A stretch of DNA of 64,000 nt from Epiperipatus broadwayi (Eukaryota > Animalia > Onychophora): the NCBI GenBank assembly GCA_028023455.1, contig JAQFVV010000001.1:6758001-6822000 (forward strand), given 5' to 3'. This document shows, one piece after another, positions 1-63,019 of the stretch (position 1 is the stretch's first letter; each line of letters opens with the position of its first letter). The notes beneath the pieces are model-generated. The model did no database searches. It was not told the origin of the DNA and worked only from the letters and a program-made list of their open reading frames with translations. The position numbers were made by a program, and so were the translations under genes.

Positions 1-99
1 CCAAAAGTTCGCAGTCAAACCGGCGTCAATCCATCTGATACATTTATGTATTCAATGTAGCATGAAAATACAACAGCACATATATACTATACTGTCAGG

Positions 100-1029
100 A
101 ATGGACATCTGAACAGTATAGTTAGAGAAGACATTGACTCTTGACCAATACAGGAATGTTACATCTGTATGGCAAGAAGAACAATAAAATAAAAACTCCA
201 TAGGAAGGGACCGCGATCCTTTGCCGACTTACAATCCCATCCATAGGCAAAGGGTTGGTGCAGCATATTCAGTGATTCTGCATGTAGTGAAACTCATACT
301 ACATCTACTAATTACACAAACATATCCAATTCATTGACCTAATTCAACTACGAAATGAATAACCTAAGATTACCCTCCCTTAATATAACTTTACAAAACA
401 ATATAGCCATTCACGCCTGACTTAAATTTAACATTTAGATATGTTCGCACAGATGAATTTTATAAAATTTGTTTTATAATGTTGAGTACAGATCAGCTGC
501 ATAGATTCCACAATTAAAAACATTCCAAAATAAACAACCGATCAAAATACAAAGTCATCGATAACGTAATAGCAGAGGGAATACAAGAAATCCAATAGCA
601 TTCATCATAAGATGTCACATTGACATTGACGGCCTATATATTCTAATCGAATGTGAAAACCACAACATAACTAACCACTAACAAATCCATGCAATGTCCA
701 TACCCAACTTAAATTTTATCATTTAAAATTTAAACAATAAATATTAATACAAATAAAATAATAAAATGGAAATGATTTTTTTTTAGCAAACAAATATGTA
801 AAAATTAAACATTTATAATTAATTTGAAACATAAGTCAGAGAAAAGTTCTTTTTTAAAAAATTTAGATTAACTGATCAAATCTTTAAAGTTCTTAATTAC
901 TTCAGATTTTAAAATCGTTCAGTTCAATTGCTTACGGTAGTAGATTTCCAGGTTCCTGTTAGCAATTCCCACGAAGACTTTCATGGAAGACCGGTCTGAT
1001 ATTCTGGAGGTAGCATTAGCTGGTTCCAT
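100..1029 (-). CDS. Candidate spliced host gene, 5' part (exons about 936-1029, 233-277, and from 164 leftwards); product unknown
   Basis: ATG at 1029 opens MEPANATSRISDRSSMKVFVGIANRNLEIYY, ending at a GTAAGC donor (935). A 45-nt exon is bounded by catgcAG and GTAAGT. A 68-nt intron ends in a strong pyrimidine tract (ttttattgttcttcttgccatacAG). Phases join in frame as ...YY-QSLNMLHQPFAYGWD-YVTFLYWSRVNVFSNYTVQ. CpG-containing upstream region (1050-1240) has CCAAT and TGACGTC motifs. No family recognised. Confidence 0.45.
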
Positions 1030-8355: not shown

Positions 8356-8924
8356 ATATGTTAATTCTATATTTTGTATTAATATAAATACACACTTAAA
8401 GTGTAAGATATATAAACAATATTTATATATTAAATAGACAATCACCGACTTAACAAATGATAAATTTTATACTCTAGCGCTTTCGAAGGTCTAAGCTTTC
8501 ATTTTCAAAGAAGTAGCTGGAATCCGAAGATGCAAATTAGGGTGGACTAGATTTTTGTTGACCTAAGACGCCATTGCATGCCAGACAAACCTCTCATGGT
8601 GTGCAGAGAGCAGTATGAGTTGCCAAGGAGGATCAAAGAGGCATATTATATCATCTCTGACGTCCACGCTATGAATAAAAAAGAAACATTTTACGCCATC
8701 TCTAGGAAGTGGCAAATCTAGGTCAACAAAATCTAGTCCACCCTAATTTGCATATCTCACATCTTCGAATTCCAGCTATTTCTTTGAAAATGAAGGCTTA
8801 GACCTTCGTATAAAATTTATCACTTGTTAAGTAGGTGATTGTCTATTTAATATAGACATATTATTTATATATCTTATAGTTTACATGTGTATTTATATTA
8901 ACACAAAATATAGATTTTACATAT
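8356..8924 (+). mobile_element. Penelope-like element 3' fragment (GIY-YIG C-terminus plus pseudo-LTR) with an inverted pLTR copy on its 5' side
   Basis: 8569-8721 reads RHCMPDKPLMVCREQYELPRRIKEAYYIISDVHAMNKKETFYAISRKWQI*, matching the PLE endonuclease tail (RxxKEAxYI...MN...W). Segment about 8356-8565 is the reverse complement of about 8718-8924. Confidence 0.85.
8470..8516 (-). ncRNA. Type I minimal hammerhead ribozyme, U3-A8 core variant, in the PLE pLTR
   Basis: Minus strand: cuacuucu UUGAAAA u GAAAG cuuaga CCUUC GAAA GCGC U A gagua. Stem II is a perfect GAAGG/CCUUC in the sister arm (8792-8807). Stem III is the palindrome AGCGCU; the cleavage triplet is CUA; stem I is imperfect. The plus-strand arm has lost 12 nt including GAAA-stem III. 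Confidence 0.6.
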
Positions 8925-10682: not shown

Positions 10683-11276
10683 GAATATGCAGTATATTAA
10701 ATTATTATTGTTTGTGTTTTGTCAATATTAAATAATTTTAAAACATATTAACGTCTGCAGTATTATTCACTTTGTTTATATTAAATCACCATCCATAACT
10801 ATTAATATATATATTAGATAATCAGCCATAAGTGGTGTGAGTGTGTTTGGTTAAGTTATGAAACATTTAGTTAATTATTCCTGAGTCACTCGCTTTACCC
10901 TTTGCTACTGCCAGCATGGAAATTAAGAGATTACGGGTGTGACCTCATATATGTCATTCATAAGGTAGTAAGTCAGGGAGGGTTGGTGAAGGAACTGAGG
11001 TATGGTCGGATTTGGTCTCAAACCCTCATCTAGATCAGCCTTGGTATAATTTATCAAAACTCTGGATTTTGTTGCATGAATGTTTAAATATGACTGTTAC
11101 AATATATATATATATATATATATAGTCAAAATAAGAGTCATAGATCAATTCATAGATCACATGACCCTATCTCTTAAGCTTGTAAGTTATAAACAGTGAG
11201 GATTGCCAATTCCTCTACAACCTTTATGATAAATGCTTTAGCACTTAAAATATCTCTGTCAGGAACCCCTCCCCAA

Positions 11277-11319
11277 ACCCCTGACCATGGTTTTGTGCTT
11301 TGGCACTCCTCAGAGAGGT
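11277..11319 (-). ncRNA. Family A HHR copy 1 (G12 to A, probably inactive)
   Basis: Reverse complement: ACCUCU CUGAGGA GUGC CAAA GCAC AAAA CC AU GGU C AGGGGU. Confidence 0.8.
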
Positions 11320-11710
11320 GTCAGGGTAAGTTCAGACACTAGATCTAAAAATACCAACCCAAAGCTAAGCACTTAACTAAAAGTTATCTATTGAGTGGAA
11401 AATCTGAAATTTTCAGACATCTACATGGCTTCAAACCCAGCTATCCAACTCAAATAGCTATATGGGGCTGATAGATCTTCAGCCATACCATATATTAGTA
11501 GTCATAGCAATATAAAATTGCATAATACTTTTAGCAGAGACTATAAATAGTCAAAATAAGAGTCATAGATCAATTCATAGATCACATGACCCTATCTCTT
11601 AAGCTTGTAAGTTATAAACAGTGAGGATTGCCAATTCCTCTACAAGCTTTATGATAAATGCTTAGCCAGAGCCAGCACTTAAAATATCTCTGTCAGGAAC
11701 CCCTTCCTGA

Positions 11711-11753
11711 ACCCCTGACCATGGTTTCGTGCTTTGGCACTCCTCAGAGAGGT
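11711..11753 (-). ncRNA. Family A HHR copy 2 (intact core)
   Basis: Reverse complement: ACCUCU CUGAGGA GUGC CAAA GCAC GAAA CC AU GGU C AGGGGU. 6-bp stem I (one GU pair), 4-bp stem II, palindromic stem III ACCAUGGU, GUC cleavage site. Confidence 0.92.
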
Positions 11754-11840
11754 GTCAGGGTAAGTTCAGACACTAGAGCTAAAAATACCAACCCAATGCT
11801 AAGCACTTAACTAAAGGTTATCTATTGAACTTACCCTGAC

Positions 11841-11883
11841 ACCTCTCTGAGGAGTGCCAAAGCATGAAACCATGGTCAGGGGT
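11841..11883 (+). ncRNA. Family A HHR copy 3 (core intact; stem II closing pair G-U)
   Basis: acctct CTGAGGA gtgc caaa gcat GAAA ccatggt C aggggt; predicted cleavage after 11877. Confidence 0.88.
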
Positions 11884-12274
11884 TTGGGGAGGGGTTCCTG
11901 ACAGAGATATTTTAAGTGCTGGCTCTGGCTAAGCATTTATCATAAAGCTTGTAGAGGAATTGGCAATCCTCACTGTTTATAACTTACAAGCTTAAGAGAT
12001 AGGGTCATGTGATCTATGAATTGATCTATGACTCTTATTTTGACTATTTATAGTCTCTGCTAAAAGTCTTATGCAATTTTATATTGCTATGACTACTAAT
12101 ATATGGTATGGCTGAAGATCTATCAGCCCCATATAGCTATTTGAGTTGGATTGCTGGGTTTGAAGACATGTAGATGTCTGAAAATTTCAGATTTTCCACT
12201 CAATAGATAACTTATAGTTAAGTGCTTAGTTTTGGATTGGTATTTTTAGATCTAGTGTCTGAACTTACCCTGAC

Positions 12275-12317
12275 ACCTCTCTGAGGAGTGCCAAAGCACA
12301 AAACCATGGTCAGGGGT
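12275..12317 (+). ncRNA. Family A HHR copy 4 (G12 to A)
   Basis: acctct CTGAGGA gtgc caaa gcac AAAA ccatggt C aggggt. Confidence 0.8.
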
Positions 12318-12408
12318 TTGGGGAGAGGTTCCTGACAGAGATATTTTAAGTGCTGGCTCTGGCTAAGCATTTATCATAAAGCTTGTAGAGGAATTAGCAA
12401 TCCTCACT

Positions 12409-12411
<3 letters not shown>

Positions 12412-12494
<83 letters not shown>
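12412..12494. repeat. (TA)n microsatellite flanking family A
   Basis: About 41 TA units; a shorter (TA)n lies at 11102-11124. Confidence 0.98.
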
Positions 12495-28450: not shown

Positions 28451-29515
28451 AATATTGTTTTATACTAAAAATGTATTACCGTAATAGCTGATAATTGTCT
28501 ACATTCTCCTGTAAAATATATTTTATTATACATTAATTACAATATATACATATATTATAATTTATTCTTATAAATATAATTATTCCTAAATATAGTTTAT
28601 TAAAATTATATGCTTACGTATAAACTTAGTTTTTAATATTTCATTACATGTAATAAATTTATATATAAATATATACAATAGAAAATCCCATCTATAAAGT
28701 AAAATATGAATTAATATCGAAATATATTTCAACCAATGACTAAAAAAATTAATATGAGACATAGATAGTCGAAAACATGATTTTAACGTTTTCACCTTCT
28801 CACTAGTCCCAATTTAATAGTAAGAAACCTTTTATATAGATGCATATGTATTTATTTTAAGCTATTAAATATGTTTAGCTCATGCAACTACTAAAGTCGT
28901 TATTTGTCAGACTCAAGAGCACCTTGCCAGCTCATATCATCATCATCAACATAATAATAATGGAACTATGATATAGATATACCTATAAAATAAGGACAAT
29001 ATGAGAAACAAATCTGAAATATTAAAAATCTATTTAATCACTTAGTGAAAAATTAAGTCATAAAAGATTATAGTTTTACAAGTCTAAGATTAATTCATAA
29101 TTCATTAATAATCCTATACATTTATACATATGACACGCTATAACACGTAATTTTAAATAAAATTTGTTACAATTTTAATACTCTTGAGAGGTTATAAATT
29201 ATTCCAAACGTGAGTGTGCGCGCGCGTGACTGGAATTGAATTGTAAATGATGGAGATTAAGAGCCTATGGAAGATAAGGCTTTCAAATCTTACTGTGTGC
29301 CTACATACACGATTTTAATTTTTAATAAATGGCTGGAATAGAAGAGTTTTGATATTAATCCCAATTTTTCTCAATAGATAGTTTTATAATTTATTTTACT
29401 TTATACTATTACAAACTTTTTTATTATATTTCATTTACACATATTATAGATTAAATTCTTGTTATGTGGAGTGCACAGTGGAATGGACTTTATTTCCGGA
29501 TGAGAAGAAGTAAGC

Positions 29516-31996
<2,481 letters not shown>

Positions 31997-33301
31997 TCAA
32001 TGAGTGAATGGATGAATAGATATTTATAGACAGATAGACCTATAGATAAAATAGATTGGAATGTAGGTAAATAGATAGATAGGCAGGTAGAGTATCCTAA
32101 AAATATATATTTAAGTGTAGAAAAATAATAATGAGAATTACTTTCCAATCATGCCTTTAAGATTTTCTTTTGTTGGTGATTTATTCCTGCAAATTTGGAC
32201 AAATGATTTCATAGTCCTTACATTAAATAATCTTTTAATGATTTTGTCTTCATTTAGCAAAGATACCCAAATTTGTAGGAACCCTTATGCAAAATGAATA
32301 ATTTTTTTTATAAATAAACTAGGAAGGCTTTTTAACTTGCCAGAGTTTTACCATGAACTGGGTCATCTACTTATATTCCTATAATGTTTCTTTTCTTAAC
32401 AAGCTCCCGTGCTCATATCATTTGTTCTAACCATTTTTATTTCCATTGCAGAAATTATGTGCTTGTTCCGCTCACTTTTGAAATCATATCTGAGCATATA
32501 TCGTGATAAACCTTTTTTGTTCTGCTGTTTTGAATTAATGGTAGTAAAGACCAGCTTTTTATTTTCAAGTTTTTAGTGCCTATCTTATCATCTTCATGTA
32601 CTGTATTTTGCTCATATCTATCATATTTAATAGCTTTGGTTTTGTTCTATGTCCAGCTAATCTGTGACTATCATAATGTGCTATATGGTCTTGGCTAATT
32701 AAGCTACAATATCATGATAAGTTGCCCTTCCAATAAAAAAAGGCTATTAAGGTTTTATTTTCTGATCTATCTTTAACTAACTTCACTTTATGCTTTACAT
32801 TGGACACTTATAAACTACTTAGTATTGACAATCTATAATTCTCATTTGTATAAGGTTTTACGGATAAAAATTCCAACAATTCTAAAGAACTTTATAAAGA
32901 TTATTACATGCTATAGTTATCTTTTCTTTCATTGCTAAGTAAAAACTTTTTAAATCTATTCAGGTGCTCTGAAGAATTTACTCCTGTGCCTTCATTAAAG
33001 ACATTAAACTGGATAAACTTAACAATAGAATTTGTATTTGATTATGATGTTATTTGTTAACAAGAGAAATACTCTCTCTCTATATATATATATGTGTGTA
33101 TATATATATATATGTGTGTGTGTGTGCGTGTGTGTGTGTGTGTTTTGTCCCCAATGTCATCATTCTTGGAAATTAACACAAATATTCTTTCATTTTCTTG
33201 ATTAATAACAAAGACAAATTTTATGAAGAAATAAATATACATAAAAGTAAAGTTAAACCGGTGAACTTATGAAACCTTCTAATAAATGAAAAGAAATCAA
33301 C

Positions 33302-36140
33302 TTTTTTATTATTATTAATGAAATCTATTTATTCATTAGTTTACATAACAAGAAAATCAATTGACAGTTACATGATTGTTGTTGAGGTAAACATAGAAAG
33401 AAAAGGAAACTATGACATTACATTTATGAAATCAAAGCGCGATTGTCTTTGTCTATGTTTGTCAGATCATCCAGAGAAATCTGTTCCCGTGTGTCTGCAT
33501 ACAGTTTGTGGGATGTTATTAGAAAGTCTCTGGTTTTTAGACCGCAAAGGTGTTTCTTGAAGACTGGCCATGGGTCCGCTGAGTTGTCTCGAAAAACACT
33601 GAGACACCTGGTCAGCCACTTTGCAAAGAGAATTATGAATGCCATTTGAATTATAGCAAATTCTCCAGTTCTCAGTGCCCCACTGATGTCCAGTATCTGA
33701 GAACATCCCGACCTGATACTAGATATTAATCTCATTTCTATGTCTCTGAATTTTGAGCAACAAGAAATAAGGTAATCAATATCCTCCTCCTCCTGGTTGC
33801 ACAATGAGCAGATGGGAGAAATGCACTTAAATCCCCTATGATCTACCAAGAATTGACTTGTTGGAAGAGCATCCAGACTGAATTTGATAATAAAATTTAG
33901 TAGGCTGACGTCTAATGACCAGTGTCTGGACTTTTTTATCAATGACTTTAAGGTTAATTCTAGCCTGATTGGGTTACTCTGCTGACTGGGATGCATGAGT
34001 TTGTAAGCATCCCAGTACCTAATCTTCCTTTCAAAAAGATCTTTTTTGGCAGATATGAGCCCTGCCACGTGATCCTCTATTTCTGCTACCCACCTGTTCT
34101 TGTTAGGCGGTGGGGTATTGTTGGGTGGTGGGGTGTTGGTGGGTTCAACTGAAAGGGAATTTTGGCTTCTATCTTGTAGATCTTTAGATACCTTCAGAGT
34201 AGCTATTGTCCTCTACATAAACAGCACCTGAAAGTCATGCAGACCAAGACCATTTAAGTCCTTGGGTTTTCTCATTCTATTGAGGCCTATACAAACAATT
34301 CTACCAGGTGATGATTTCCATAACACTTTTGTGCACTGTGACCCTATTTTATTTTGGAAGGTCCTGGTCAGCCTAATAAATGGTAGATAATATGCAATTC
34401 TTGGGAAGACCAGCATATTCAACAGTGTCACCTTGCTTGTGAGTGACAGGGAGATTGAGGATAAGGTGCCAGCCACATTGCTGGTCCTTTCTAGTAGCAT
34501 GGATTCTATCTGACATCTCATTGCTGACCGTGACAACACCACTGGCAGCCCCAGAAAACTTTGGGGTGTGCCTGTGAAATTAGATGTAATGGTTTTGCCA
34601 CTGCAGGTCTTCCAGATTGCTGTCTTTGCTGGATTCACTTTCAGATGGTACTTAATGGCACACTGTTCTAGAAGCACATGTAGCTGTGGAAGATGCTTTG
34701 CAGATGGGAGGATGATGGTTACATCATCTACATATGATATATGGTGAATTACCTCCCCCAGTGCTGGGATAAATACTCCAGGCAGCCTTTTCTCCACCTC
34801 TTTCAAGAAGGGGTCAATATATGTTATGAAACACAGGGTGCTTAGTGGTGCCCCTGTGGTATGGAGATGTGTGGTTGAAATCCAGGGGCAAGAGATCCAT
34901 CTAAAGATACATTCATACTTCTGTTGAGGAGCAAATTAGCGATGATATTAATGTAGACCAATGGAACTCCATAGTGCCTGAGAACTGCGAAGAGTTGAGC
35001 CGGCACCACAGAGTCAAAGGCTGCTGCAAAGTCTAACTGGACAACCACTAGTAAAGATTTTCTTTTTTCCCTTATGTAGTAGAGTGTTACCATGAATTTG
35101 TAAACAGCATCTTCAGTAGAATGACCCTTGTGGGCAAATTGATGCCTGGAAATTTTATCATGCAGCTGCTGCTGAATCTTGTCTTTTATTATTGATTCAA
35201 TAGCTTTAATCAAGAGTGGTGTCATAGAGATTGGATGCAAGTTTGTAAAATCAGGTGGGTTCACTTGTTTTTTAGGAAGGGCACAAGGGCAATCGGATAC
35301 AAGTCAGGGATGGGCTGGTACCTCCCTGCCAATACACCAATTAGCCCCTGTACCACAGGTGCAGTGAATCTGCATAGGTCGACCAGGACAAATGTTGGGA
35401 TCCCATGTAGTCCAGGGTGTGTTTTCTCAGGATAATCCAGCAGCTTCTGCATGATGAGGTCTTGTGTAATTCCATGATCACCCACCTCTTCTTCTTCCCA
35501 CCAAAAGTCTCCTATACTGAATGGCTCACATTGTAACTTATCCTTAAAATGCATGAAAATTTTGTGTAACATTGCTTCTCCTGTGTAACTGTATTCATTT
35601 ATGATGATCATGAAGGGTGTGGGTCTTTTCCTAGCACCAATTGCCCACCAGAGATAACTTCGTGTCCAGTTGTGCTGTGCTGCCAGATGTACTTGGCCCT
35701 CTTTACTGCTATGTATTGTGCCAGCACCCCCTGTCTTTCTCTATATTGACCCTTTAGACTCATGATCTCCCTGACACTAGCTCCCACAGCTGAGCAACCT
35801 GGTTGCCTATTGTGTCTAATTCCTTGAGTAGCCTGATCAGACCCTTGGTGCACGTGGTGAAGGTGTCGATCAGACCACTCAGCACACCTACAAAGGCCAA
35901 CCAGGCATGGACAGATGGTAGTGACAGAAGGCCTATTTTATGGAACAGAATGTAGGCCTCAGAGAAAATCCACTCAGTTGTGTTGGCTTTGTTTAGCATT
36001 CTGATGGTTCTAGACTGTTGAAGTGAAGTTAAAGGCACCTGGTTTAGGTTGAGAGATATCAACACGGCCAAGTGATCAGAATACGGTACCAATTGGAATG
36101 AAGCATGTAGGATATGATGAAGTTCTGGAGACTATAGAAC
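33302..36140 (-). mobile_element. 5'-truncated L1/Tx1-like LINE ORF2 (end of APE endonuclease, RT, C-terminal zinc knuckle), broken by a few frameshifts and stops
   Basis: Collinear ORFs: SDHLAV (APE end); HPISMTPLLIKAIE, QFAHKG, QLDFAAAFDSV, IPQG and SYVDD (RT); CSLCNQEEEDIDYLISCC (CCHC-type tail). 3' UTR has AATAAA and ends in (aat)3-A6 at about 33302-33318. Confidence 0.92.
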
Positions 36141-38464: not shown

Positions 38465-39299
38465 AAGCTTTAGAAATGTACATTTTCTTATAATTTGAAC
38501 ATGTATATTAATATAATAAATTACAAATTAACTAAAGTAATAATTCTCCTTGTATCTATGCATTGGATAATATACTCATAATAAACTTATAAAATGTATT
38601 ATTTGACTTGCTTTATTATTTTGTCTCAACTGATGAAATGCAGCAATTGTGAAGTTATATATTATGATATATACAAATAATTTTTTTTATTATAACTTAT
38701 ATTTAAATACTTTTAAGACAGGTTTTAACTTGAATCATATGTGTCTTGAAATTATAATAGTCAAACAGTATCTTTAATTGCTGATAGAGAGATCTCTCAA
38801 ACCATAACACAAGATAGGGACTTTTATAAAGATAAGAGTGTTTTATCTTTAACCTAACTTTCCACTTATTTAGGCCAACCTGAAGCATCTTGATTTGGGA
38901 GCTGAAACTGTTATTCTCTCCACTGTTTAAGTCCACTATTTTTCTTACAATTTAACCTTTTTACAACAAATTAATATTATGATCTTTATACATTTGTATC
39001 ACAATCCAAGTAATACCAACAGTTTTACAAGAACACTAGTGCTAGAAATTATTTTAGATCTAACTTTAGATAAATGAAAAATATAAATTAGACTACGATT
39101 CAGGCTTCCTCCTAATTAATATGAGTAGGATTGTATTTAACAAAAATTGTAGCAATTACAATTATATTTTGATTGGGATGTGTTTTCCTTTTGTTTAGAT
39201 AAAATATTAAGCACACTATATTGGTTATATTAAAAATAAGATCTCAAACTTTGTAAAAGATTTCCAAACTTTTTATGTCCTTGTTGAGAAACTTTTATA

Positions 39300-48700: not shown

Positions 48701-48858
48701 AAATATGTTTTACTTTGCTTAGAATAAATGGTGATGTGGGACAAAAGGTACCCGATTCTCATCATTGTTTATACTATGCTGAGTGCAATAATTATCAATT
48801 TCATAATAGTTCTTAATATTGAATAGATGCTTAGAATATAATTGAATCAATATTACAG

Positions 48859-49466
48859 AATTGTTGTTTAAGCATTTATTTTATATAGCACATGTTTATA
48901 AATTGTAATACATTAAAGATCAGCCTGTCAAGCTATTGTGCATGCACTTTTTATTAGTGTTAATAATAAATGAGTACTTTGACTCCCAACACAAGATATA
49001 GTATTTAGGAAAGAATAAAATGAATCCACTTATTCTATCCAACCCAAATGCTTATATATGGGCAAATCTTAAGTACTGGAAGTGAAAGTGTGAGGATAGG
49101 CCACTCACTTTAAATTACTGTTTACAATGTTGCTATATAAAATAAATGCTTATTTACATATGTTTAAGTTTCATTTGAGAATGACGTTTAATAAATTCTA
49201 GATAAATTCACCAACATCATTCATTCAGACATCGTAAACAGTAATTTAAAGTGAGTGGTCTATCCTCATGCTTTCCCTTCCAGTACTTAAGATTTTCCCA
49301 TATATAAGCATTTGGGTTGGATAGAATAAGTGGATTCATTTTATTCTTTCCTAAATACTATATCTTGTGTTGGGAGTCAAAGTATTCATTTATTATTAAC
49401 ACTCATAAAAAGCACATGCACAATAGCTTGACAGGCTGATCTTTAATGTATTAAAATTGCTGTTTA
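48859..49466. mobile_element. Family C copy 1: two opposed arms of a circularly permuted unit of about 337 bp, probable 12-bp TSD
   Basis: Left arm 48869-49130 and right arm 49127-49452 are inverted, with atgt microhomology at the junction. aattgttgttta (48859-48870) and aattgctgttta (49455-49466) flank it. Confidence 0.85.
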
Positions 49467-49668
49467 TAAATATTTATATTATCCTTATTGACATCCAATA
49501 TGACTACCATATCCTATAACCTCAACTGAGCTAAGCCATGGAGTGATAACAGCATAAGAATTTATCAGTATAAAAAAAAAGCAATTTCAATTATAAATTT
49601 ATTCTTTCTTGTATAGAATTGGCGCCTGTGCATTTATTTGTACATAAAGTGAAATAGGTGAAGAAAGC

Positions 49669-49674
49669 AGAGGT

Positions 49675-49712
<38 letters not shown>

Positions 49713-49727
49713 ACCTCTAATTTTATT

Positions 49728-49769
<42 letters not shown>

Positions 49770-49778
49770 AATAAAATT
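49669..49778. repeat. Two abutting perfect palindromes centred on (TA)n
   Basis: agaggttact(at)n agtaacctct (49669-49718) followed by aattttattcaa(ta)n ttgaataaaatt (49719-49778). Confidence 0.95.
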
Positions 49779-51599
49779 GACTTGCATTATATATAAAAAA
49801 TTTACAATCTTTCTTTAATTTAAGCAGCAATCTTTGACAAACCATCAACAAATTTTGTTGGATAATATTTCTATTATACCCAATGTCATCTAGAAACTAT
49901 TTGACACTTCATTAAACTATGCAATTTAATTTCTATTTAAACATCGTTGCAATACTCAGTTCGATACTAAAGTTTGCAATCTTCAATTTGATATTACACA
50001 GTCAATAAAATTTAGCAGTAATTTATTATTTTAAAAAAAACTTATTTATAAAATGAGTTACATTAAGAGCTCTGCCTTTTCTATTGAGCTGTTACAAAAG
50101 AGCCTTCACTTAAATTAACACCTAAATTGCAATCAAACTTTTGAATTTAATAGAAAATTGCAACAATATCAAATGGAAAGTGGGTTAATTTAAATTATTT
50201 AATAAGATGTCACTTAATTTTCTGGCTGTTGATAATAACACTTGTGACTAAAATACCTATCCATCAAAGACTGTTTGATTTTTTCATTAAGATTGGCATT
50301 TAAAAAACCATAACATCTCTATAGATAGTGTAAGTTAAATTAACTTCAGTTACATATTTATGTGGTATTTAATTATACATATATATATAATAAAATAGGA
50401 TATTCCTTTGGAATATATTTCATTGCTGTATAAATTAATTAAATGTATAGAAAGAAATTTTATTAATTTAAAAGTGTGACTTCATAAAATATTGAGTTAT
50501 TATTTTTATTTGAAAGGCATTGTACACTACTTTTATAAATAAAAATTGATTTATTCAGTGATAAGTTAAAAAGAAATTCAATTCTTTAATTTAAAGTAGT
50601 AATTTTAAAGAATTATTTTAAAATAGATTGGAGCATTATTTATTGTTCTATTGGAAAGTAGCCAAGAATGATTTCTTATCAAAATAACTGTTTTGATCAT
50701 ATGAACAAAGGTAGGCTGTTGAATTTCAAAAAAGAAAACGGGATTTTAAACTCTCAAAGTGCATTAGTAAATAAATAGTTTTAATCCCAAGAATTATGGA
50801 ATCAAGATTCAAATGAATAATCTGCTTCTTTCTGTTTTCATTTATCATAAATAGGATTACCTGACAACCCAATTGCTGCAAAAATCATGATTTTTCTACA
50901 TCTTTGTTTGCACCTATCTTCTATATTTCAAATGAAATTCCATTATAGTTTAATGGTCATCTTCCATATCATAACTTCAGATAACATTAATGGTAAAAAA
51001 CTATAGAACAATTTATAAATCGAGCAAAACTCTCCAATTAATGAACTAGTATAGGAAATGTGATCATGTGATGCTTAATGGTTTAATTTATAAATCTTTA
51101 TTAAATATATTTTATTTATAATAAATTGTTTTTCACATAAATATCATGCTGATATTAATTATTTTAAATTGTCAATTCTTAAATATTGGATTGATCACTA
51201 TGTGCATAATTATCATAGATATATGCAAGTAATTTTCAAAACATTTTAAATATAATGTTCTAAAATAATACTTGTATAATAAATAATAATGTCACATGTT
51301 AATAGAAATTATAAAATATATAATGTGTATTATTTGATTATATTCATGATCTTAAATAATGATTATTTAAATGGTACTAAATATTTATTTTATATACATG
51401 GAATTTGTTTGATACTGTATGTATTGGCAATTGAGATATTATTGTTTAGCTTGACATTATTGTTAGTTCCAGTTATAAATTACTATGGCTTCATTTTGTA
51501 ATGATTTCATTTTTTATAGTGAATACTTTTTTAATCATGGGTAATGTTTATATCTATAAATAATATGGCAATTATGAAGAATTAATATTTAAATATTTT

Positions 51600-51860
51600 A
51601 TATATGAAGTTTTTAGAATAGCTGTTATTTTTATACTATTACCTAGAATATTGTAGTAGAGAGTTAAGCTTATATATAACAAGCATTTCACCCTTTACTT
51701 AATTTTATAACCCTCAGTATATAGGTTACTGTGATACTAGGTATTGAGATAAGGATAGCTTGGTCTGTTCTGGCAATGTCTCAGATGGTTGATATGTGGG
51801 TTTGTTCATTTTATATACTAATTTCGGTATTGGCAAGTTTATATCTGTTCAGAAACAATC
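51600..51860 (-). mobile_element. Family E repeat copy, homologous to 63020-63230 (+); possible PLE pLTR relic with degenerate HHR-like core
   Basis: Reverse complement tccttatctcaatacctagtatcacagtaacctatataCTGAGG...gtGAAAtgcttgttatatataagcttaact aligns with tccttatcttaatacctagtaacacagtaacctatacaCTGAAA...gtGAAAtgtctgttacatataagcttaact. Confidence 0.6.
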
Positions 51861-52582
51861 TGTGCATAAACTTAATTATTAAATCCATAAATAACTAATC
51901 ATATTAACTTTTTTATTGACAGACAGTGAATTTACGTTATTGTGTGTTATAATAATGTATATAAATAAGTAAATTGTAGTGTTGTAGTGTCTCATTATAT
52001 TTGGCATTTGTCATTATTTTGCAATCAATAAGTTAATTGGAGTGTAATAGAGTCTCATGTATCTAAATGATCTTAGCAGGCTACAAAAAGAAATGATTGT
52101 ATATCCTGTGATGTTAGACTGTACACATCCCATGTAAATTGTCCTTAGATGATTTATTTGTGAGATGTATATTTTGACAGTTACAATATATATATATATA
52201 TTGTAACCCTTGGTTTATTTCATCTATAAACCAATTGTAAGAAAGTGAACTATTTATAGGCAAAAAAAAAATTTTTTTTAATGTAAGAAAAGTTGAAGTT
52301 TTATTTGGAAAAATCAATAATTGTATAACTTAAATCTAACATATATAGAGATACAGTTTGTATTTGTGTAAAATCTAACTAGCATTATTTAATGATAGGG
52401 GATTGATTTTTTTTGTGCATGCTATAATAAGTGAAAAATAGATATTTATATGTCTAAAACAAAGAGCCTTCATGAATTTTAATGTTTATTAATAAAAAGT
52501 TGGTGAAAATTGAAATTGAATTGGTTATAAGTAGCTTTAGTTTGACAGTTCTTTTCAAGAGAATAGGCTTAAAATTATAAAA

Positions 52583-52685
52583 AATTATAATGGATATTTA
52601 TGTTTGTGATTATAAGAAATTATAATGGATATTTAATGTTTGTGATTATAAGAAATTATAGTGGATATGTTATGCTCATGTGATC
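52583..52685. repeat. Minisatellite, about 35-bp unit x3
   Basis: aattataatggatatttatgtttgtgattataaga repeated, third unit degenerate. Confidence 0.9.
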
Positions 52686-53631
52686 TGAATAAGCAGTTTT
52701 CTATTTAATGTTTTGCATACGTATGTATGTGTGTGATATAGATATATGGATTTGTTTATTTTTTTTTATTTATAGAGATTTCTTTATTGTGTTCTATATT
52801 ATTTCATAATATAGTGTAAAAATAAATCTGTTTAATTTGTTGCTTGCAGATCCAAAATGTAATTTTAAATAAAAAGTTATTTAGGTAACATTTATTTTGC
52901 AAAATGTTAATTGGGTTTATTATAATTCACTTAGCGATGTGTTTCAACCATATGGTATAATTGGAACTGTAAGATGTTAAAGTGACAGTTAACAAATAGT
53001 CTTTAAATGTTGGTCTGAGAGGTTAATTAAAGGAAGAGAAAAGATTTCCTCCCTTTTCTTATAAAAGGAGCCAAGTAGAATGGGGGCTAATTCATAACTA
53101 ACTTGCTAATTCAAACTAAATTGCCAATTTTTATCTCTGAACGTTTTCTCTGGCTTTTCTTTTTTTTTTTCTCAGAATTAAACATGTTAGGTATAAAAAT
53201 TATAACTTAGATATGAATTGCTAATTCATATATAATAGGTGTATGTTTTGTTTCTCCAAAGTCAATTATGAACAAATCAACTTTTAATAAGAGACTCTGT
53301 GTCCAACACCACAATATGTCTATTTGGCTTATTAAAAATTTGTTTAAAGAGAGAACTATAAAACTGTTATATAATGTTAAAGGGCTAATTCATGTTTTAA
53401 TAATTATTTGGCTTATTAAAATTTGTTTAAAGAGCATCAAACTTTTGTACAATGTTTTAAAAGCCAATTCATATTTAATAATCAGAATCTACTTGTTTGA
53501 CTGTATTTTAAACCTAAAATGAAAAAAAGGGAAGAAAAAAACAACTATATTCAAACCCAGGAAGAAACTCATCAAAATGGAAAGTAATCAGCAGAACTCT
53601 TTTAAATTTTTTTTTAAATTATCAGTGTAGC

Positions 53632-53743
53632 TACATTTTGATTAAAGGAACTGTCTGTGCATTTTATATACATTTTGATTAAAGGAACTGTCTGTGCATT
53701 TTTATATACATCTTGATTAAAAGAACTTTCTGTGCATCTATAT
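53632..53743. repeat. Minisatellite, 37-38-bp unit x3
   Basis: tacattttgattaaaggaactgtctgtgcattttata repeated. Confidence 0.92.
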
Positions 53744-54399
53744 AGCTATCTCCAAAATAAAATAAAATAAATAATAATTAATTGGTGGACAATAACATCA
53801 AGTCTTCAAACTTGGCCTTGAAGGAAAGAGACAATGGAAAGAGACTATCATAATGTTTAATATTTATTTTGCTTTATTTATATAATATGTAGCATGTTTT
53901 ATAGAAACTTTAATGATTATATTAATTTAATTTTTTTTATGTTTTAAAAATGTTTAAAGGAAAGAAAAATGATTTTGATCCCATTGAAGCAAAAAAAAAG
54001 GAAAAGAAAGATTTAAAAGTCAAATGCTTATGTATATATTTTTTTAGAAAAAAAAAAGAAATACAAAATATTTTTTGTTTGTTGACAAAATTTTATGCTT
54101 AATATATATATATATTGGATGGTCATATGAAAAATCATTGTTATACTATAATGTGTTAATGATCTGTTATTAATAGAGATATTGGGTGGATGTTGTTGTG
54201 GGCTTGACTGTTTAAAATTGAGATAATTCATAGTTTTGATTCGAAATCTGGTTAGTCTTTGTCATTTATCTGGACTATAATCGATGTGTGTGTGTGCATA
54301 TGTAAAGCTATAAATGCTTGTTATTACTGAGGAGTTGTCTTACCACCTCATAGATAAGAAATAACTATCTCATAATTTATTTACTATGGCAGTAGAAGA

Positions 54400-54900
54400 T
54401 GAGGACCAGTTCCCACTCTATTTATTTTTATTAAGGTAGGGAATTATTAATAGAGTTATTGTTCGAGTTGTAGAAAATGTTGTGCACACCTATATAGAGT
54501 AAATGTATAGACAAAGAGTTCTTCACATGATTCTAGATCTTAGAGAAGACCTCTCTCTGGCTAAAGCAGACATTTGAAGTTAGGAGTTGTTTTGTTTTTT
54601 TAATTTTCCTTACTAAGATGCTGATGTGTGCACATTATAAAATATTGCATGGTGATGTGAAACATGTTGAGGGTTTTCTTGTCTAGGGCAGGATAAAAGT
54701 TGCATTGACAGAATGAGGATTTCAGTCAGATATATGTGTGTTGATGGAGGGGATGACAGAGATTTTAATTTGGAAACTAACCGGTCTATAGTCGATTTTT
54801 GTGAAGGATGGTAAATTGAATATCATCAAGTTGGAGCAACATGCTGACCTATCAAAATATATACCATTAAAAAGTGTGAATATTTGGCTTGCATAAACAT
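54400..54900 (-). mobile_element. Decayed Penelope-like RT thumb/linker relic
   Basis: YHPSQKSTIDRLVSKLKSLSSP (about 54800) resembles PLE HHPxSQKxSVIxTLVxRAxxLxS; IIPYLNK lies downstream. Confidence 0.45.
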
Positions 54901-55245
54901 AAAATTATGTTTTTTGAATTTAAACCCATTTTCAGGTCCAATGAGGGATTTTTCATGTCACATCATCCTATTCTTAAAAAATCTAAAAGATTATTGCTTG
55001 TTGAAGTAGTTAAATTTATGGTTATTTATTATTGCTTGGTAGAATAATTAAAATTGATAATTATTTTGAAATAGTCCAATTGATAATGATTGCAATAAAA
55101 GGGGGAGCAGGAATTTATAGGTTTTCTCAAAGTTAAAAGAGCATTTTTATATACGTAAATACAGAATTCTGATTCCGTGCCTAAGAGTTTTTAATATTCA
55201 ATCAATAAATGGGTCAAAATGATGAATGAGTTATTCAGAAATTTA

Positions 55246-56142
55246 ATTAATTTAAATATGTAAATAAGTATTTATTTTATATAGCATATGTTTACAATTG
55301 TATACATTCAAATATCAGCCTTTTTAAGCTAATTGTGCATACGCTTTGCGAGTGTTAATAATAAATGAATACTTTCTCACCAATACAAGATATAGTATTT
55401 ATGCAGGAATAAAAGGAATCCTCTTATTCCTACGACTCAAATGCTTATATATGAGCAAATATGAAGTACTGGCAAGTAAAGCGTGAGGATGGAACCGTCA
55501 CTTTAAATTACTATATACGATGTCTGAATGAATGACGTGGGTGAAATTGTCTAGAATTTACTAAATGTCATTCCAACTGAAACTTAATCATATGTAAATA
55601 AGCATTTATTTTATATAGCATATGTTTACAATTGTATACATTCAAATATCAGCCTTAGTCATAGGAATAAGAGAATTCCTTTTATTCCTGCATAAATACT
55701 ATATCTTGTATTGGTGAGAAAGTATTCATTTATTATTAACACTCACAAAGCGTATGCACAATTAGCTTAAAAAGGTTGATATTTGAATGTATACAATTGT
55801 AAACATATGCTATATAAAATAAATGCTTATTTACATATGTTTAAGTTTCAGTTGGAATGACGTTTAGTAAATTCTAGACAATTTCACCCATGTCATTTCA
55901 TTCAGACATCGTATATAGTAATTTAAAGTGATGGTTCCATCCTCACACTTTACTTGCCAGTACTTCAGATTTGCTCATACATAAGCATTTGAGTTGTAGG
56001 AATAAGAGGATTCCTTTTATTCCTGCATAAATACTATATCTTGTATTGGTGAGAAAGTATTCATTTATTATTAACACTCGCAAAGTGTATGCACAATTAG
56101 CTTTAAAAGGCTGATATTTGAATGTATTAATTTAAATATGTA
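55246..56142. mobile_element. Family C copy 2: 334-335-bp monomer, left arm about 1.2 units, right arm about 1.4 units inverted, perfect 17-bp TSD
   Basis: Unit repeats at 55256/55590 (period 334) and 55664/55999 (period 335). Orientation switches at about 55656/55657. attaatttaaatatgta occurs at 55246-55262 and 56126-56142. Confidence 0.92.
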
Positions 56143-56699
56143 TTCGTATCATCAGTATCATTCTTTAGTAGATCTCATATCATATAATATTTGAGTATAA
56201 TGATATTATATATAAGGGTGTTTTTTATTTTTTATTATTATTATTATTATTATTATTGTAATACAGATTTGTTATTGTTATAAAATTACATTGCGTCTTG
56301 TGTTTTAGTGTTTCAAATATCTCCAGAATCTACATCCTGCACCTATATTTAAAACTAATATTAGATCATATTTAAATTATTCATTTTTAATATTGATTGA
56401 TTCCATGATTGATTTACAATATTCATTTTTCTATTGATTATTTCCATAGTTGATTCAAATAATTCATTAATGATTTACATAGTTAATTTGCATAATCTAC
56501 TTTTAAGATCGATTTCTATATTTCACTTATATCAGAAATTTTTTTGATCGATTTATATGATTAATATCTGTGTTTTACTTCCATAGTGTACTTTGGCAAA
56601 ATACAATAGATTTAAAATTACTAATTAAATTTGGGTAAACAGATTATATAAAATAGAATAAGATGAAAGAAAATAGTTAATTTAGGTTTATTAAATTTA

Positions 56700-59154: not shown

Positions 59155-60478
59155 ATCAAGTATAAAAAGAATAATAAAAATTTGAGATTCAATTTGTAGA
59201 TTTATTAATAGTATATAGTATAATGAAATATAAGAACTTATTTACATGTATTGTTTATAATACTGATTCAAAACGACAATTTTTTAAGAAATTCATAAAA
59301 TATTATTAAATAAATTATTTTTATTAAATATAAATTAATAATTACTTTTTTCTGTACCAAAACATATCTTCAATCAATAAACTGATTTTAATTATATTCA
59401 GGTTAAACATGATTCGATTAATTTATAATAGATTTTATCTGGTTTTTGATTTTATTGAAAGCATTAAAATAATCAAAAATTATCAATGCATTACCTAGGA
59501 AAATTCTGATGAGCTATCCATATCAATCTCACCTAACTAATTATTGTTAATTAAATCTATTCACTTACGACAAATGTATGTGCATGTGGGATGCAAATAG
59601 TAATTATTGTCAATGTCTACAAAATAGCTAGAAAGGTATGTGCGTAAATCTATATTATAAGTCAAATTTCTGGTATTGCAAAATAATCACATTTTTAATG
59701 TTACATTCATACTGACTTGTTCTAACAAATAGCGCATTTGTTGATAATGGGGCTAAAAAAATTTAAATCAAAATATTTGCATTATAATAACAATATTCTT
59801 ATTGCAACTTCTTAGAAAATACTACAATCGTGTTAAGAACAATACTTACAATCATGCTGACTTATAACTATTAGGTATATTTCCAATGACATCTTATTTG
59901 ATAAATTATTTTAGGTCTATATACACAATTAATAACCCTTCAAGGATGATCATTCTGAAGAATATTGCTACTGTTGGCTGAGCCTTGTTCTAATCTCACA
60001 GAAACTAATTAATCCTTCTTTATTCTTAGAGTTAATATAATGTATTAAATACACTGACAAGCATTACAATTACCAAATGCAAATTAATCTTTAAAGCCAA
60101 TCATTTCTTAAGAAATCTTGATGTTTTCTTATTATGATTTGTATGTCTTCTTGATTAAATATTGTAGTAGGTTAGTGATAATTAGAGCTCATAGTTTTTG
60201 GATCTTGTCTGAATTTTGTCATTTTTGGATCTCGAACTTCATGCAAGCTCCCAAACAACAAACTATTCCATTTTTTCGTTTATGATTTATAGCGGAAGGT
60301 TCTGAAATGCCTGCTATAAAAAAATAAAAAGGATTTAACCTATTTATTCAGTACACTGAATGTTTATAAAAATAAATAAGGAATTTGAACTTAGAATTTT
60401 TAGTCTATATTTATCCTCAACTCCATTTTAAACAACTGATATGCATGATCACACACATATAAAAAAGATAAATGATCC

Positions 60479-60520
60479 CCAATATACGTATTTCATGAAG
60501 AAGCAGCACTCATCAGTTGG
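60479..60520 (-). ncRNA. Family B type I minimal HHR (core intact)
   Basis: Reverse complement: CCAA CUGAUGA GUG cugcuucuu CAU GAAA UACGUA U A UUGG. 4-bp stem I, palindromic stem III AUACGUAU, AUA cleavage triplet. Confidence 0.85.
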
Positions 60521-60938
60521 CCAGATCACAATTTCTCACACATATTTACAATCAGTGCTTTGCTTATATTAAGATAATTCCTAAAACTTTAGTGGATAGG
60601 CTTCAATCTTCTCACCCTTCCAACAATTCAACCATCCATTTCATTAAAAAATCAATGATACAATGCTCAAATCCCTTGGTGGATTTGACATTGTAGGCAT
60701 AGCCATATACACATTACATCAATTCAATCACTCATATTATTGGACCATTACATATCCATTTATATGAATAAGAAAGGGATGGACTGAACTTATGAACATT
60801 TCATCATTGCTGTTTCAATGAAGTGAATAATCGAACTGTTGGAAGGGTGAGAAGATTGAAGACTGCCCATAGAAATTTTAAGAAATTGCTATTTTCATAT
60901 TTGCTATCTTCATAAAAGCTGAGGGTAAATATAATGTA

Positions 60939-62103
60939 ATCGGGCTTGGCCACTTGATGGCAGTCAAAAACAATATGTTCGGGGCCGCGTTATATTTTTA
61001 AATCGAATCGCTGGTTTTTTTTTTTGGTTATTAATTTATTGATTGCTATAACTTTTTTTTTCATGCCTTTTTATTAAAAAAGTTGTTTAATTTTAATTTT
61101 GTATTTAGTAAACGACAACCTTTTTTTTTATTTTTAAATCGTTGTTTTTGGACAAAGCTGCAACTCTGTGATGTCTACTTAGTGATGTCTTTCGCTTAAT
61201 TATTGGTAAACGACAACCTTTTTTTTATTTTTAAATTGCTGTTTTTGGACAAAGCTGCTACTCTGTGATGTCTATTTAGCGATGTCTTTCGCATAATTAT
61301 TGCTTTCTACATAACAAAACAACTATGTAGGGTTAGGGTTAGTTTTAGGATTAGGTTTAGGGTTAGTTTTAGGGTTAGTTAGGGTTAATTTTAGGGTTAG
61401 TTTTATGGTTAGTGTTCTGTTGTTTGTAATGCTAAAATAAAAGATATCAAAATCGTAACCGTACTCAGACAGTAGAAAGAAACTCAAACTTTTTTAAACA
61501 ACAACAAACACATATAAATGTCTTATTTACTTATTAAACATGTTTATAATATGTGCTTTCTATGAAATTTACAAAAAAATGTGTATATTTTTATTGGACA
61601 GCAGAAATACTCGACTTCTGTTTTCGGCAACTGCGGAAAAAGTTATGCGATCGCCAGCCATTTTATGAACTACGTGGTATTTCACATGAAAACGAGATTT
61701 CGCACGCGAACTCGGTCAAATTCTGTTGACGTACCCTCTGCAAGCTTTTACACATAACACCTTCTCTAAATAAGGGTGTGTCCATTTGGAAAATTACTAT
61801 AAAGTCAGGTTTCTTAAATTCATTACAAATACAAAGATTGTGTAACGTATATTGTAAAAATTTGACTAAGCAAACTACACACACATATACATCAAATTGT
61901 ACATGAAAGATAAGTGTGTGGATTCACAGTAACTGTCGCAAAGCAGAAATAGGCCATATTATTTCTGTGTTACGTCATCATCAATGGCCTTCTAATGGCT
62001 AAGACAAACATTAGATGTTTTCTATAGCCATAAGTCAGGCCTTGTAAATGGCATTTGTTAGTGTTTTGGTGAGACAGAATGCCATCAAGTGGCCAAGCCC
62101 GAT
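60939..62103. mobile_element. Non-autonomous DNA transposon (about 1.16 kb) with perfect TIRs
   Basis: (ta)atcgggcttggccacttgatggca at 60937-60962 is exactly inverted at 62080-62105. TSD is ambiguous (TA if the ends are ATCGGG, AT if CGGG). Internal 98-bp duplication at 61108-61303. No transposase ORF. CpG retained. Confidence 0.9.
61328..61412 (+). repeat. Degenerate TTAGGG-containing array (about 12-bp ttttagggttag period) inside the TIR element
   Basis: tagggttagggttagttttaggattaggtttagggttagttttagggttagttagggttaattttagggttag. Confidence 0.9.
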
Positions 62104-63019
62104 TAGGTTATAAGTACAAAGCTGAGTACTGATTGTGTATATGTATGGGAGATTATGATCTGTCCCACCGGTTCTGCACAAAATACATATATTGATGATT
62201 ATTTATCTTTTTCACGTGTGTGGTCATGTGTATCACTTGTTTGAAATGGAGTGAAGGATGAGTATAGACTGAAAATTCTAAGTTCAAATTCTTCTGTTTA
62301 ATAATAAGGAATGTATTAATATAATTCTTTTTTTTTCTTGTTTTTAACTTCTTTTTTTTTTTCAACATAGTTTCATTTTTAAAAAATATATTTTTAATTA
62401 CAAAAAAAAATATTTTTATTACATTCTCAAATAAAATAAAATATTTATTTTTGCAGGTGTTGAAAAACTTCTGCTTAGTTTTCAGCTTATTAAAGAAGTT
62501 CCATTTTATATAATCTGTAAGTCAAATTTAATATCACCTTATGTATATATAAAATTTTGTTGTTGTTGTTGTTTTGGGCTAGTATTATATGATTTCCTAT
62601 TTTATTTATTATTACTAATATAGTGGTAGGAAGTATTTAAGTTTTCAATAAGTGTATGTTTGTATGTATGTACGTATTATTATTGTAATAGATACATAGT
62701 TCCGTATGAAACTTTACTAGAAGGTGCCACTAGATAATAAATCTAGACTTCCTTTCTAATCAAATTGTAATTTAATATCGAGAATTAATATAAGAAAATA
62801 CGAAAGAAAGAAGTTTAGTTTACTAGCAAAGTCACACACAAAAATGCAGGGGAGTTATAAATTATAAACTGAAACTCTTCTAATTAATAATAAATCTTGA
62901 AATAAAAGACATGTTTGCCCATTATGAGTTACATTTGGACATCTACATCAAAATAATATATTATTAAATAAAATAATTTATTTAAGAAAAAGTCAAATAA
63001 CAATGCCATTGTAATACTT

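Follow-up and report, generated by a model that had tools for sequence, protein, structure and literature searches.

A 335-nt non-coding repeat without a hammerhead in the onychophoran Epiperipatus broadwayi carries the insertion footprint of Penelope-like elements

The window analysed here is a stretch of 64,000 nucleotides from the onychophoran Epiperipatus broadwayi (GenBank assembly GCA_028023455.1, contig JAQFVV010000001.1, positions 6,758,001 to 6,822,000). It is AT-rich (28% GC) and holds many short non-coding repeats. One of these, family C, has a unit of 335 nt with 29% GC and thus falls within the size range (approximately 150-450 nt) and the low GC content of retrozymes, the non-coding retroelements that are defined by a hammerhead ribozyme. 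Family C is present as two insertions, copy 1 (48871-49454) and copy 2 (55263-56125), which are separated by 5.8 kb of unrelated DNA; a BLAST search detected no further copies in the window. Each insertion consists of two head-to-head, circularly permuted arms between target-site duplications (TSDs). The arms were mapped by BLAST and pairwise projection onto a reference unit, U (55657-55991), and span 0.8-1.4 units each. In copy 2 the arms comprise 1.2 and 1.4 units, and direct repeats within them are spaced 334-335 nt apart, a partial tandem as known from insertions of Penelope-like elements (PLEs). Identity is 95-98% between the arms of one copy and 83-87% between copies; the original prediction had correctly described two diverged copies, and its by-eye estimate of 75-80% identity was slightly too low. 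Repeated parts inside a single arm differ by 1-5%, which could stem from heterogeneity of a tandem transcript or from mutations acquired later. The open reading frames (ORFs) of the unit do not exceed 46 amino acids and have no Pfam matches. ARAGORN detected no tRNA-like sequence in family C, and Rfam gave no matches for a Pol III-type head. Thus, neither this head nor the A-rich or microsatellite 3′ tail of LINE-dependent short interspersed elements is found in family C. Exact-pattern scans of metagenome and viral contigs revealed no copies outside the window, and neither exact look-up nor a homologue search with the 46-amino-acid ORF of the unit found the family in Logan contigs.

The TSDs of copy 2 (17 nt, ATTAATTTAAATATGTA, beginning at 55246 and 56126) are identical, and those of copy 1 (12 nt, AATTGYTGTTTA, beginning at 48859 and 49455) differ by one mismatch. 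Both are AT-rich, and AT-rich targets combined with TSDs of variable length are features of PLE-type insertion. At the left end of copy 2, the last 7 nt of the 3′ end of the target (ATATGTA) match the template, and this overlap is microhomology at the priming site. Contigs of four public sequencing runs (X5-X8) from two organisms were placed on 55150-56250. One contig of X6 and one of X8 join 55246 directly to 56127, skipping 880 nt with 16 letters shared, and represent the empty site of copy 2. This allele implies that the whole two-arm block was inserted in a single event, and it places the TSD and the single-event insertion of copy 2 beyond chance. The insertion is missing from other individuals or from the sister species. 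The 335-bp unit, the permuted two-arm layout and the TSDs that had been read from the letters are therefore all supported by the arm mapping, the duplications and the empty site; the circularity of the unit was a deduction of the original prediction, not an observation. Run X6 contains a second joint across copy 2, from 55262 to 56149, which skips 886 nt and contains 7 letters of different sequence (CTACATG); possibly this is a further allele of the empty site. Family C is highly repeated in both organisms, with a summed depth of hundreds to thousands compared with 0-30 in the flanks.

The outer ends of the four arms cluster in two classes, a "short" one at U134-146 and a "long" one at U173-182, and the inner ends differ in all four arms (U116, U1, U250, and U152). 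Allowing for microhomology, the short ends lie at U134-136 in copy 2 and at about U139-146 in copy 1, and the long ends at U175-182 and U173-175, respectively. Each insertion combines one long with one short arm, both in the two copies of family C and in a second, hammerhead-bearing family of the window, family A. In unit coordinates, the outer end of the long arm reaches 27-34 nt (copy 1) or 39-48 nt (copy 2) beyond that of the short arm. A tail on one side only, delimited by two start sites, is an optional feature of PLE-type insertion; it is seen here in two insertions (n = 2), plus family A with 61-71 nt. In family C this one-arm tail of 27-48 nt exists because the arms terminate at two sites that flank a conserved AU-rich stem-loop, U145-186. 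The stretch U152-198 is the best-conserved part of the unit (46/47 positions, or 98%, identical between copies), and the hairpin alone is thermodynamically ordinary (z = -0.4). We regard U145-186 as the putative start region of reverse transcription.

Table 1. Positions of family C, its structural elements and the family used for comparison (positions within the window; U, coordinates of the 335-nt unit).
Feature	Position	Strand	Remarks
Copy 1, left TSD	48859..48870	.	12 nt, AATTGTTGTTTA
Copy 1, left arm	48871..49130	-	U250..335 then 1..173; "long" terminus
Copy 1, right arm	49131..49454	+	U152..335 then 1..~141/143; "short" terminus
Copy 1, right TSD	49455..49466	.	12 nt, single mismatch to left TSD
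Copy 2, left TSD	55246..55262	.	17 nt; last 7 nt (ATATGTA) also match element antisense
Copy 2, left arm	55263..55656	-	U116..335 then 1..175/182; outer end is the "long", tail-bearing terminus
Copy 2, right arm	55657..56125	+	U1..335 then 1..134/136 (1.4 units); outer end is the "short" terminus
Copy 2, right TSD	56126..56142	.	17 nt, identical to left TSD
AU-rich stem-loop, U145-186	55801..55842	+	Bracketed by both terminus classes; second instance 55586-55627 (-)
Three-way-junction RNA domain	55947..56058	+ (sense)	112 nt; further instances 55371-55482 (-), 49270-49383 (+), 48976-49089 (-)
Candidate distant relative of the domain	38801..38894	-	Single copy without inverted partner; own minimum free energy fold with the same three-way topology
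Family A (comparator)	11127..12415	.	434-nt unit, same two-arm anatomy, in (TA)n, four outward-facing type I hammerhead motifs

Family A also indicates which strand is the RNA. Its hammerhead matches occupy the minus strand in the left arm and the plus strand in the right arm, and the RNA sense therefore reads outward in each arm, as predicted by target-primed reverse transcription from both nicked strands. Measured from the cleavage site, the arms of family A end approximately 100 and 165 nt further downstream. Thus, these ends are internal to the unit RNA and were not made by the ribozyme. The RNA polarity of family C was taken from the hammerheads of family A and from the strand asymmetry of the RNA fold described below. 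In this polarity, both copies of family C show an inverted 5′-truncated copy abutting a direct copy, with the 3′ ends facing outward, as is characteristic of PLE-type insertion. The hammerheads of family A are partly damaged, with AAAA in place of the GAAA core at 12275-12317 or a helix II mismatch (sites 12275-12317 and 11841-11883), and one insertion of this family holds intact-looking and damaged ribozyme motifs side by side.

All these features have counterparts in the published biology of PLEs. Their insertions are strongly 5′-truncated partial tandems, often lie beside an inverted 5′-truncated copy, and carry a tail of 30-40 bp at one end only (Craig et al., 2021; PMC8557442). With a PLE protein in purified form, cleavage and extension take place on both DNA strands, preferably at AT-rich sites, and reverse transcription starts from two adjacent internal sites in a stem-loop so that the intervening sequence becomes the genomic tail (Frangieh et al., 2024; PMC11167929). 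In the same study, hammerhead mutants inserted normally and unprocessed multi-copy transcripts were proposed as the likely template. The Naiad clade and most Chlamys clades proliferate without canonical hammerheads, and in Chlamydomonas hammerhead-less non-autonomous derivatives of Chlamys form head-to-tail multicopy insertions (PMC8557442). For the retrozymes of animals, too, mobilisation by PLEs has been proposed (Cervera and de la Pena, 2020, PMC7229834; Li et al., 2026, preprint, 10.64898/2026.07.22.740005). Family C is therefore best explained, with a probability of about 0.72, as a short non-coding, non-autonomous retroelement that was copied into the genome by a PLE machinery and did not need a hammerhead. 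In such a process, a PLE protein with reverse transcriptase and GIY-YIG endonuclease activities would bind a multimeric, possibly circular, transcript of the 335-nt unit and would nick the two strands of an AT-rich target at positions 12-17 bp apart. Each nicked 3′-OH would then prime cDNA synthesis on the unit RNA, beginning either just 5′ of the AU-rich stem-loop or within its 3′ strand. The two cDNAs would run toward each other and be joined head to head at variable points of 5′ truncation. The predicted outcome is two inverted arms with outward 3′ ends and a TSD on both sides. The use of both start sites would leave a tail of 27-48 nt on one arm and none on the other, and a repeated template would account for arms longer than one unit. 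The enzyme, the form of the RNA template and the role of RNA structure in this scheme are deduced from anatomy. Since this anatomy matches the PLE footprint and agrees with published PLE biology, a new ribozyme or circularisation system is not required, and the absence of a hammerhead from family C poses no mechanistic problem.

Several observations weigh against this explanation. The rule of two start sites rests on only two insertions, and the tail of copy 2 (39-48 nt) somewhat exceeds the published 30-40 bp, as does that of family A (61-71 nt). No PLE ORF was found in the window, whose sole reverse transcriptase relic looks LINE-like. In runs X5-X8, the family-wide depth is lowest at U86-178, beside the presumed start sites, and highest at U179-335; this is unfavourable because simple 5′ truncation predicts the opposite. 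Moreover, the depth of family C does not establish transcription, because the flanks are covered too and the runs carry only a presumed RNA label.

The search for ribozymes in family C was negative. Rfam had no matches in the window at the gathering score, and even at E<=10 no ribozyme of any class (hammerhead, twister, twister-sister, pistol, hatchet, HDV-like, hairpin, or VS) was reported in 55200-56200 or 48800-49520. The classes from hammerhead to HDV-like were those for which a scan had been suggested together with the original prediction. As the arms of copy 2 hold 1.2-1.4 units, the Rfam search covered every circular permutation of the unit. The only matches to the two copies at E<=10 are long-hairpin miRNA models, which are found because of the inverted arms. 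A custom hammerhead descriptor was run on both strands with two mismatches allowed and then with the swapped cores A3-U8, U3-A8, and G3-C8. It yielded no motif conserved between the copies on either strand, and it recovered its positive controls, the hammerheads of family A and a motif at 60483-60516. Thus, the type I hammerhead that each retrozyme monomer carries is absent from family C according to both approaches, and the proposed lack of a canonical hammerhead holds at E<=10 and for swapped cores. Two candidates were rejected. The sequence AUGA(A/G)UA, conserved in antisense at U68-74, resembles a swapped core, but a frame of helix II, GAAA, and helix III is not present in both copies, and approximately 0.6 chance hexamer matches of this kind are expected per unit at its base composition. 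A three-way junction of the unit was also inspected as a permuted hammerhead; its junction strands of approximately 3, 1, and 17 nt contain neither GAAA nor CUGANGA.

This junction belongs to a conserved RNA domain. An RNAalifold consensus of the four arms places a three-way junction at U291-U67. Over the whole consensus of 49 pairs, 6 pairs show two-sided changes, and 98.5% of the cells are paired compared with 40-50% when the partners are slid. Since this structure was chosen on the same data, a second test was applied in which one copy was folded and the substitutions of the other were checked. For the whole unit, structure conservation was not significant in this test (P 0.07-0.3). For the 112-nt domain, 4 compensatory pairs contrast with 0.7 expected (P 0.002-0.004, post hoc), and an all-window scan with permutation for the maximum gave family-wise P values of 0.017-0.037 for the sense strand. 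In total, 4-5 compensatory pairs distinguish the copies in the domain. It is composed of a basal stem of approximately 15 bp, two hairpins and an unpaired strand of 15-19 nt that leads from the second hairpin to the basal stem; the 3′ 17 nt of this strand (TAAATACTATATCTTGT) are invariant between the copies. The four hairpins listed in the original prediction are indeed kept in both copies, and the first (GGAATAAG...) exchanges a G-C pair for an A-U pair. In the sense orientation the domain folds with -40.9 kcal/mol in copy 2 (z = -6.2) and -27.6 kcal/mol in copy 1 (z = -2.6), compared with -24.4 and -21.5 kcal/mol in antisense, and it contains several G-U pairs, including flips between G-U and U-G. 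Given the stronger sense fold and the G-U pairs, the likely carrier of the structure is an RNA in the polarity that the insertion geometry predicts. When the entire unit is folded as a circle on the sense strand, copy 2 folds well (z = -4.65) and copy 1 is not unusually stable (z = -0.4). Together, the substitution patterns are suggestive of a conserved RNA fold, as judged from two lineages only.

The domain ends approximately 70 nt upstream of the first start site, roughly where the hammerhead is situated in family A. Its function is a matter of guesswork, and a protein-binding or RNA-stabilising module appears most likely. The Anolis PLE depends on a region of 150 nt (PMC11167929), and the domain of family C would by analogy most likely serve as a binding platform for the PLE protein. 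For a self-cleaving role, we allow a few per cent. Unlikely, too, is the more specific idea that the domain and its invariant unpaired strand form a new catalytic module, possibly assisted by protein, which would have replaced the hammerhead in a PLE-dependent lineage and would yield unit-length or circular RNA. A candidate, but only a candidate, for a third lineage was located with a covariance model of the domain (R1): the minus strand at 38801-38894 scores 27.3 bits (rough E of about 6e-5), and the best background score is 15.7 bits. Approximately 80-130 nt downstream, there is a weak colinear match to the start-site region (score 20 versus 15.3 +/- 2.1 for shuffled sequence). Decoys fitted by the model also attain 24-27 of 30 pairs, and the pair count of the candidate is therefore no evidence by itself.

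Family C might instead be a true analogue of the retrozymes, in which an unrecognised self-cleaving motif, for example the three-way-junction domain, cuts and circularises the unit RNA and the circle serves as template for rolling-circle reverse transcription. The conserved domain with its invariant strand and compensatory pairs near the hammerhead position of family A, the arms longer than one unit and the good circular fold of copy 2 would all fit such a cycle. We nevertheless consider it unlikely. No Rfam ribozyme class is matched at E<=10, the junction strands resemble a hammerhead core in no permutation upon inspection of the sequence, and the unit of copy 1 has no excess stability. Furthermore, tandem parts of one arm differ by up to 5%, although rolling-circle copying of a single monomer would give repeats that are identical at the time of insertion, and cleavage is dispensable for PLE insertion in vitro (PMC11167929). 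What stands of the original prediction is thus the retrozyme-like layout without a canonical hammerhead; a different self-cleaving motif or circularisation system is not a necessity, as the PLE footprint and the known biology of these elements suffice. The same prediction had considered a ribozyme that simply decayed in both copies. Active masters elsewhere would then retain the hammerhead, and sister families in the window do carry hammerheads, some of them mutated (GAAA to AAAA at 12275-12317). Minimal hammerheads can also escape Rfam. Yet no remnant of a core was detected in either of the two lineages, which are 13-17% apart, even when two mismatches were tolerated, and no hammerhead core arises from any of the family-wide variants best supported in the four runs. 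Copy 2 also seems to be young, judging from its empty site and its identical 17-nt TSDs. With a different structured domain conserved in both lineages, decay is very unlikely.

In the twin priming of L1, reportedly described by Ostertag and Kazazian in 2001, both nicked strands prime, and a single TSD encloses an inverted 5′ segment and, joined to it, a direct 3′ segment. Family C resembles this arrangement in having an inverted and a direct segment within one TSD, and a LINE reverse transcriptase that copied transcripts of a 335-bp satellite, primed from both nicked strands, would generate such inverted segments. TSDs of 12-17 bp are also typical for LINE insertions, and a relic of a LINE-like reverse transcriptase is located at 33.4-35.3 kb of the window. 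However, no poly(A) or microsatellite 3′ tail is present at either outer end, the arms overlap in sequence as expected from a repeated template, and the start sites are internal and of two kinds. According to the literature, two internal end clusters together with a one-sided tail are specific to PLEs (PMC8557442, PMC11167929). Family C is also not similar to the rest of the window, including the LINE relic, and an origin by LINE-type twin priming is therefore improbable. Long inverted arms flanked by duplications are likewise reminiscent of a DNA transposon of the foldback or miniature inverted-repeat type, whose long inverted repeats would be built of subrepeats. Such elements are bounded by terminal inverted repeats that match each other and by TSDs of constant length, and family C has neither: its termini are not inverted copies of each other but are offset by 27-48 nt in unit coordinates, and its TSDs measure 12 and 17 bp. 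In addition, the inner junctions are asymmetric and differ between the copies, and family A combines the same anatomy with markers of RNA polarity. A DNA transposon is thus very unlikely.

Mobilisation by a PLE machinery remains the preferred explanation, and the place of family C among known elements can be specified accordingly. Like PLE insertions, its copies pair an inverted 5′-truncated copy with a direct one, form a partial tandem, occupy AT-rich targets with long TSDs of variable length, and have a one-sided tail of a few tens of nucleotides between two start sites at a stem-loop. With Naiad and Chlamys, family C shares the lack of a hammerhead. Unlike PLEs it has no ORF, its unit measures only 335 nt, and no similarity to an autonomous element is seen within the window. 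The family resembles the non-LTR retrozymes of animals in its repeated non-coding monomers of 150-450 nt and low GC content, its TSDs of more than 4 bp, the hammerhead-bearing families that reside in the same window, and the proposed dependence on PLEs (PMC7229834; 10.64898/2026.07.22.740005). It differs from them by the absence of the defining type I hammerhead in each monomer and by its two-arm insertions with 0.8-1.4 units per arm in place of long arrays. Family C thus agrees with the PLE insertion footprint on every testable point and falls outside the hammerhead-based definition of retrozymes. Among the PLE-dependent non-coding elements, which in animals are called retrozymes, it represents a variant that lacks the hammerhead. 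Because retrozymes are defined and found by their hammerhead, this criterion misses a part of the PLE-dependent non-coding repeats. The 112-nt sense-strand domain and the hammerhead-less case are new in this work; no description of an animal hammerhead-less non-autonomous family was found in the PLE and retrozyme papers cited here. Family C lends natural support, from a single genome, to the in vitro finding that PLE-type insertion does not need hammerhead cleavage. PLEs are a poorly understood class of retroelements, and the conserved fold that precedes the start sites offers a concrete candidate for the RNA feature recognised by their protein.

Other repeats of the window share some of these traits. 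On the minus strand at 60483-60516 lies a minimal type I hammerhead-like motif with CUGAUGA as its core, GAAA, and a dimer-type helix III formed by the palindrome UACGUA. It is absent from the Rfam matches at E<=1 and is situated among inverted repeats (60381-62291) that are probably the second hammerhead family of the original prediction. A near-perfect foldback of approximately 570 bp occupies 8356-8924. Its outer arms of 117 nt are 90% complementary and its inner part is palindromic too. Neither Rfam (E<=10) nor the custom scan found a hammerhead in it, and the foldback possibly represents a second two-arm family that lacks hammerheads. Recurrent short palindromes in which matching inverted sequences flank a central (TA)n occur at 49666-49775, 52180-52207, and 11095-11126, for example GTTAC(TA)nGTAAC and TTACAA(TA)nTTGTAA, and family A sits within one such tract. 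These palindromes may be preferred PLE targets or a family of tiny palindromic repeats. The reverse transcriptase relic at 33424-35264, on the minus strand, is a decayed retrotransposon; fragments of its ORFs are similar to RVT_1 (E 2e-10 and 2e-7) and weakly to zf-RVT. It looks LINE-like and not PLE-like, and it has no similarity to family C. Finally, a microsatellite-like array of approximately 2.7 kb with a period of 8-12 bp extends over 29374-32100 and yields an artefactual ORF of 836 amino acids.

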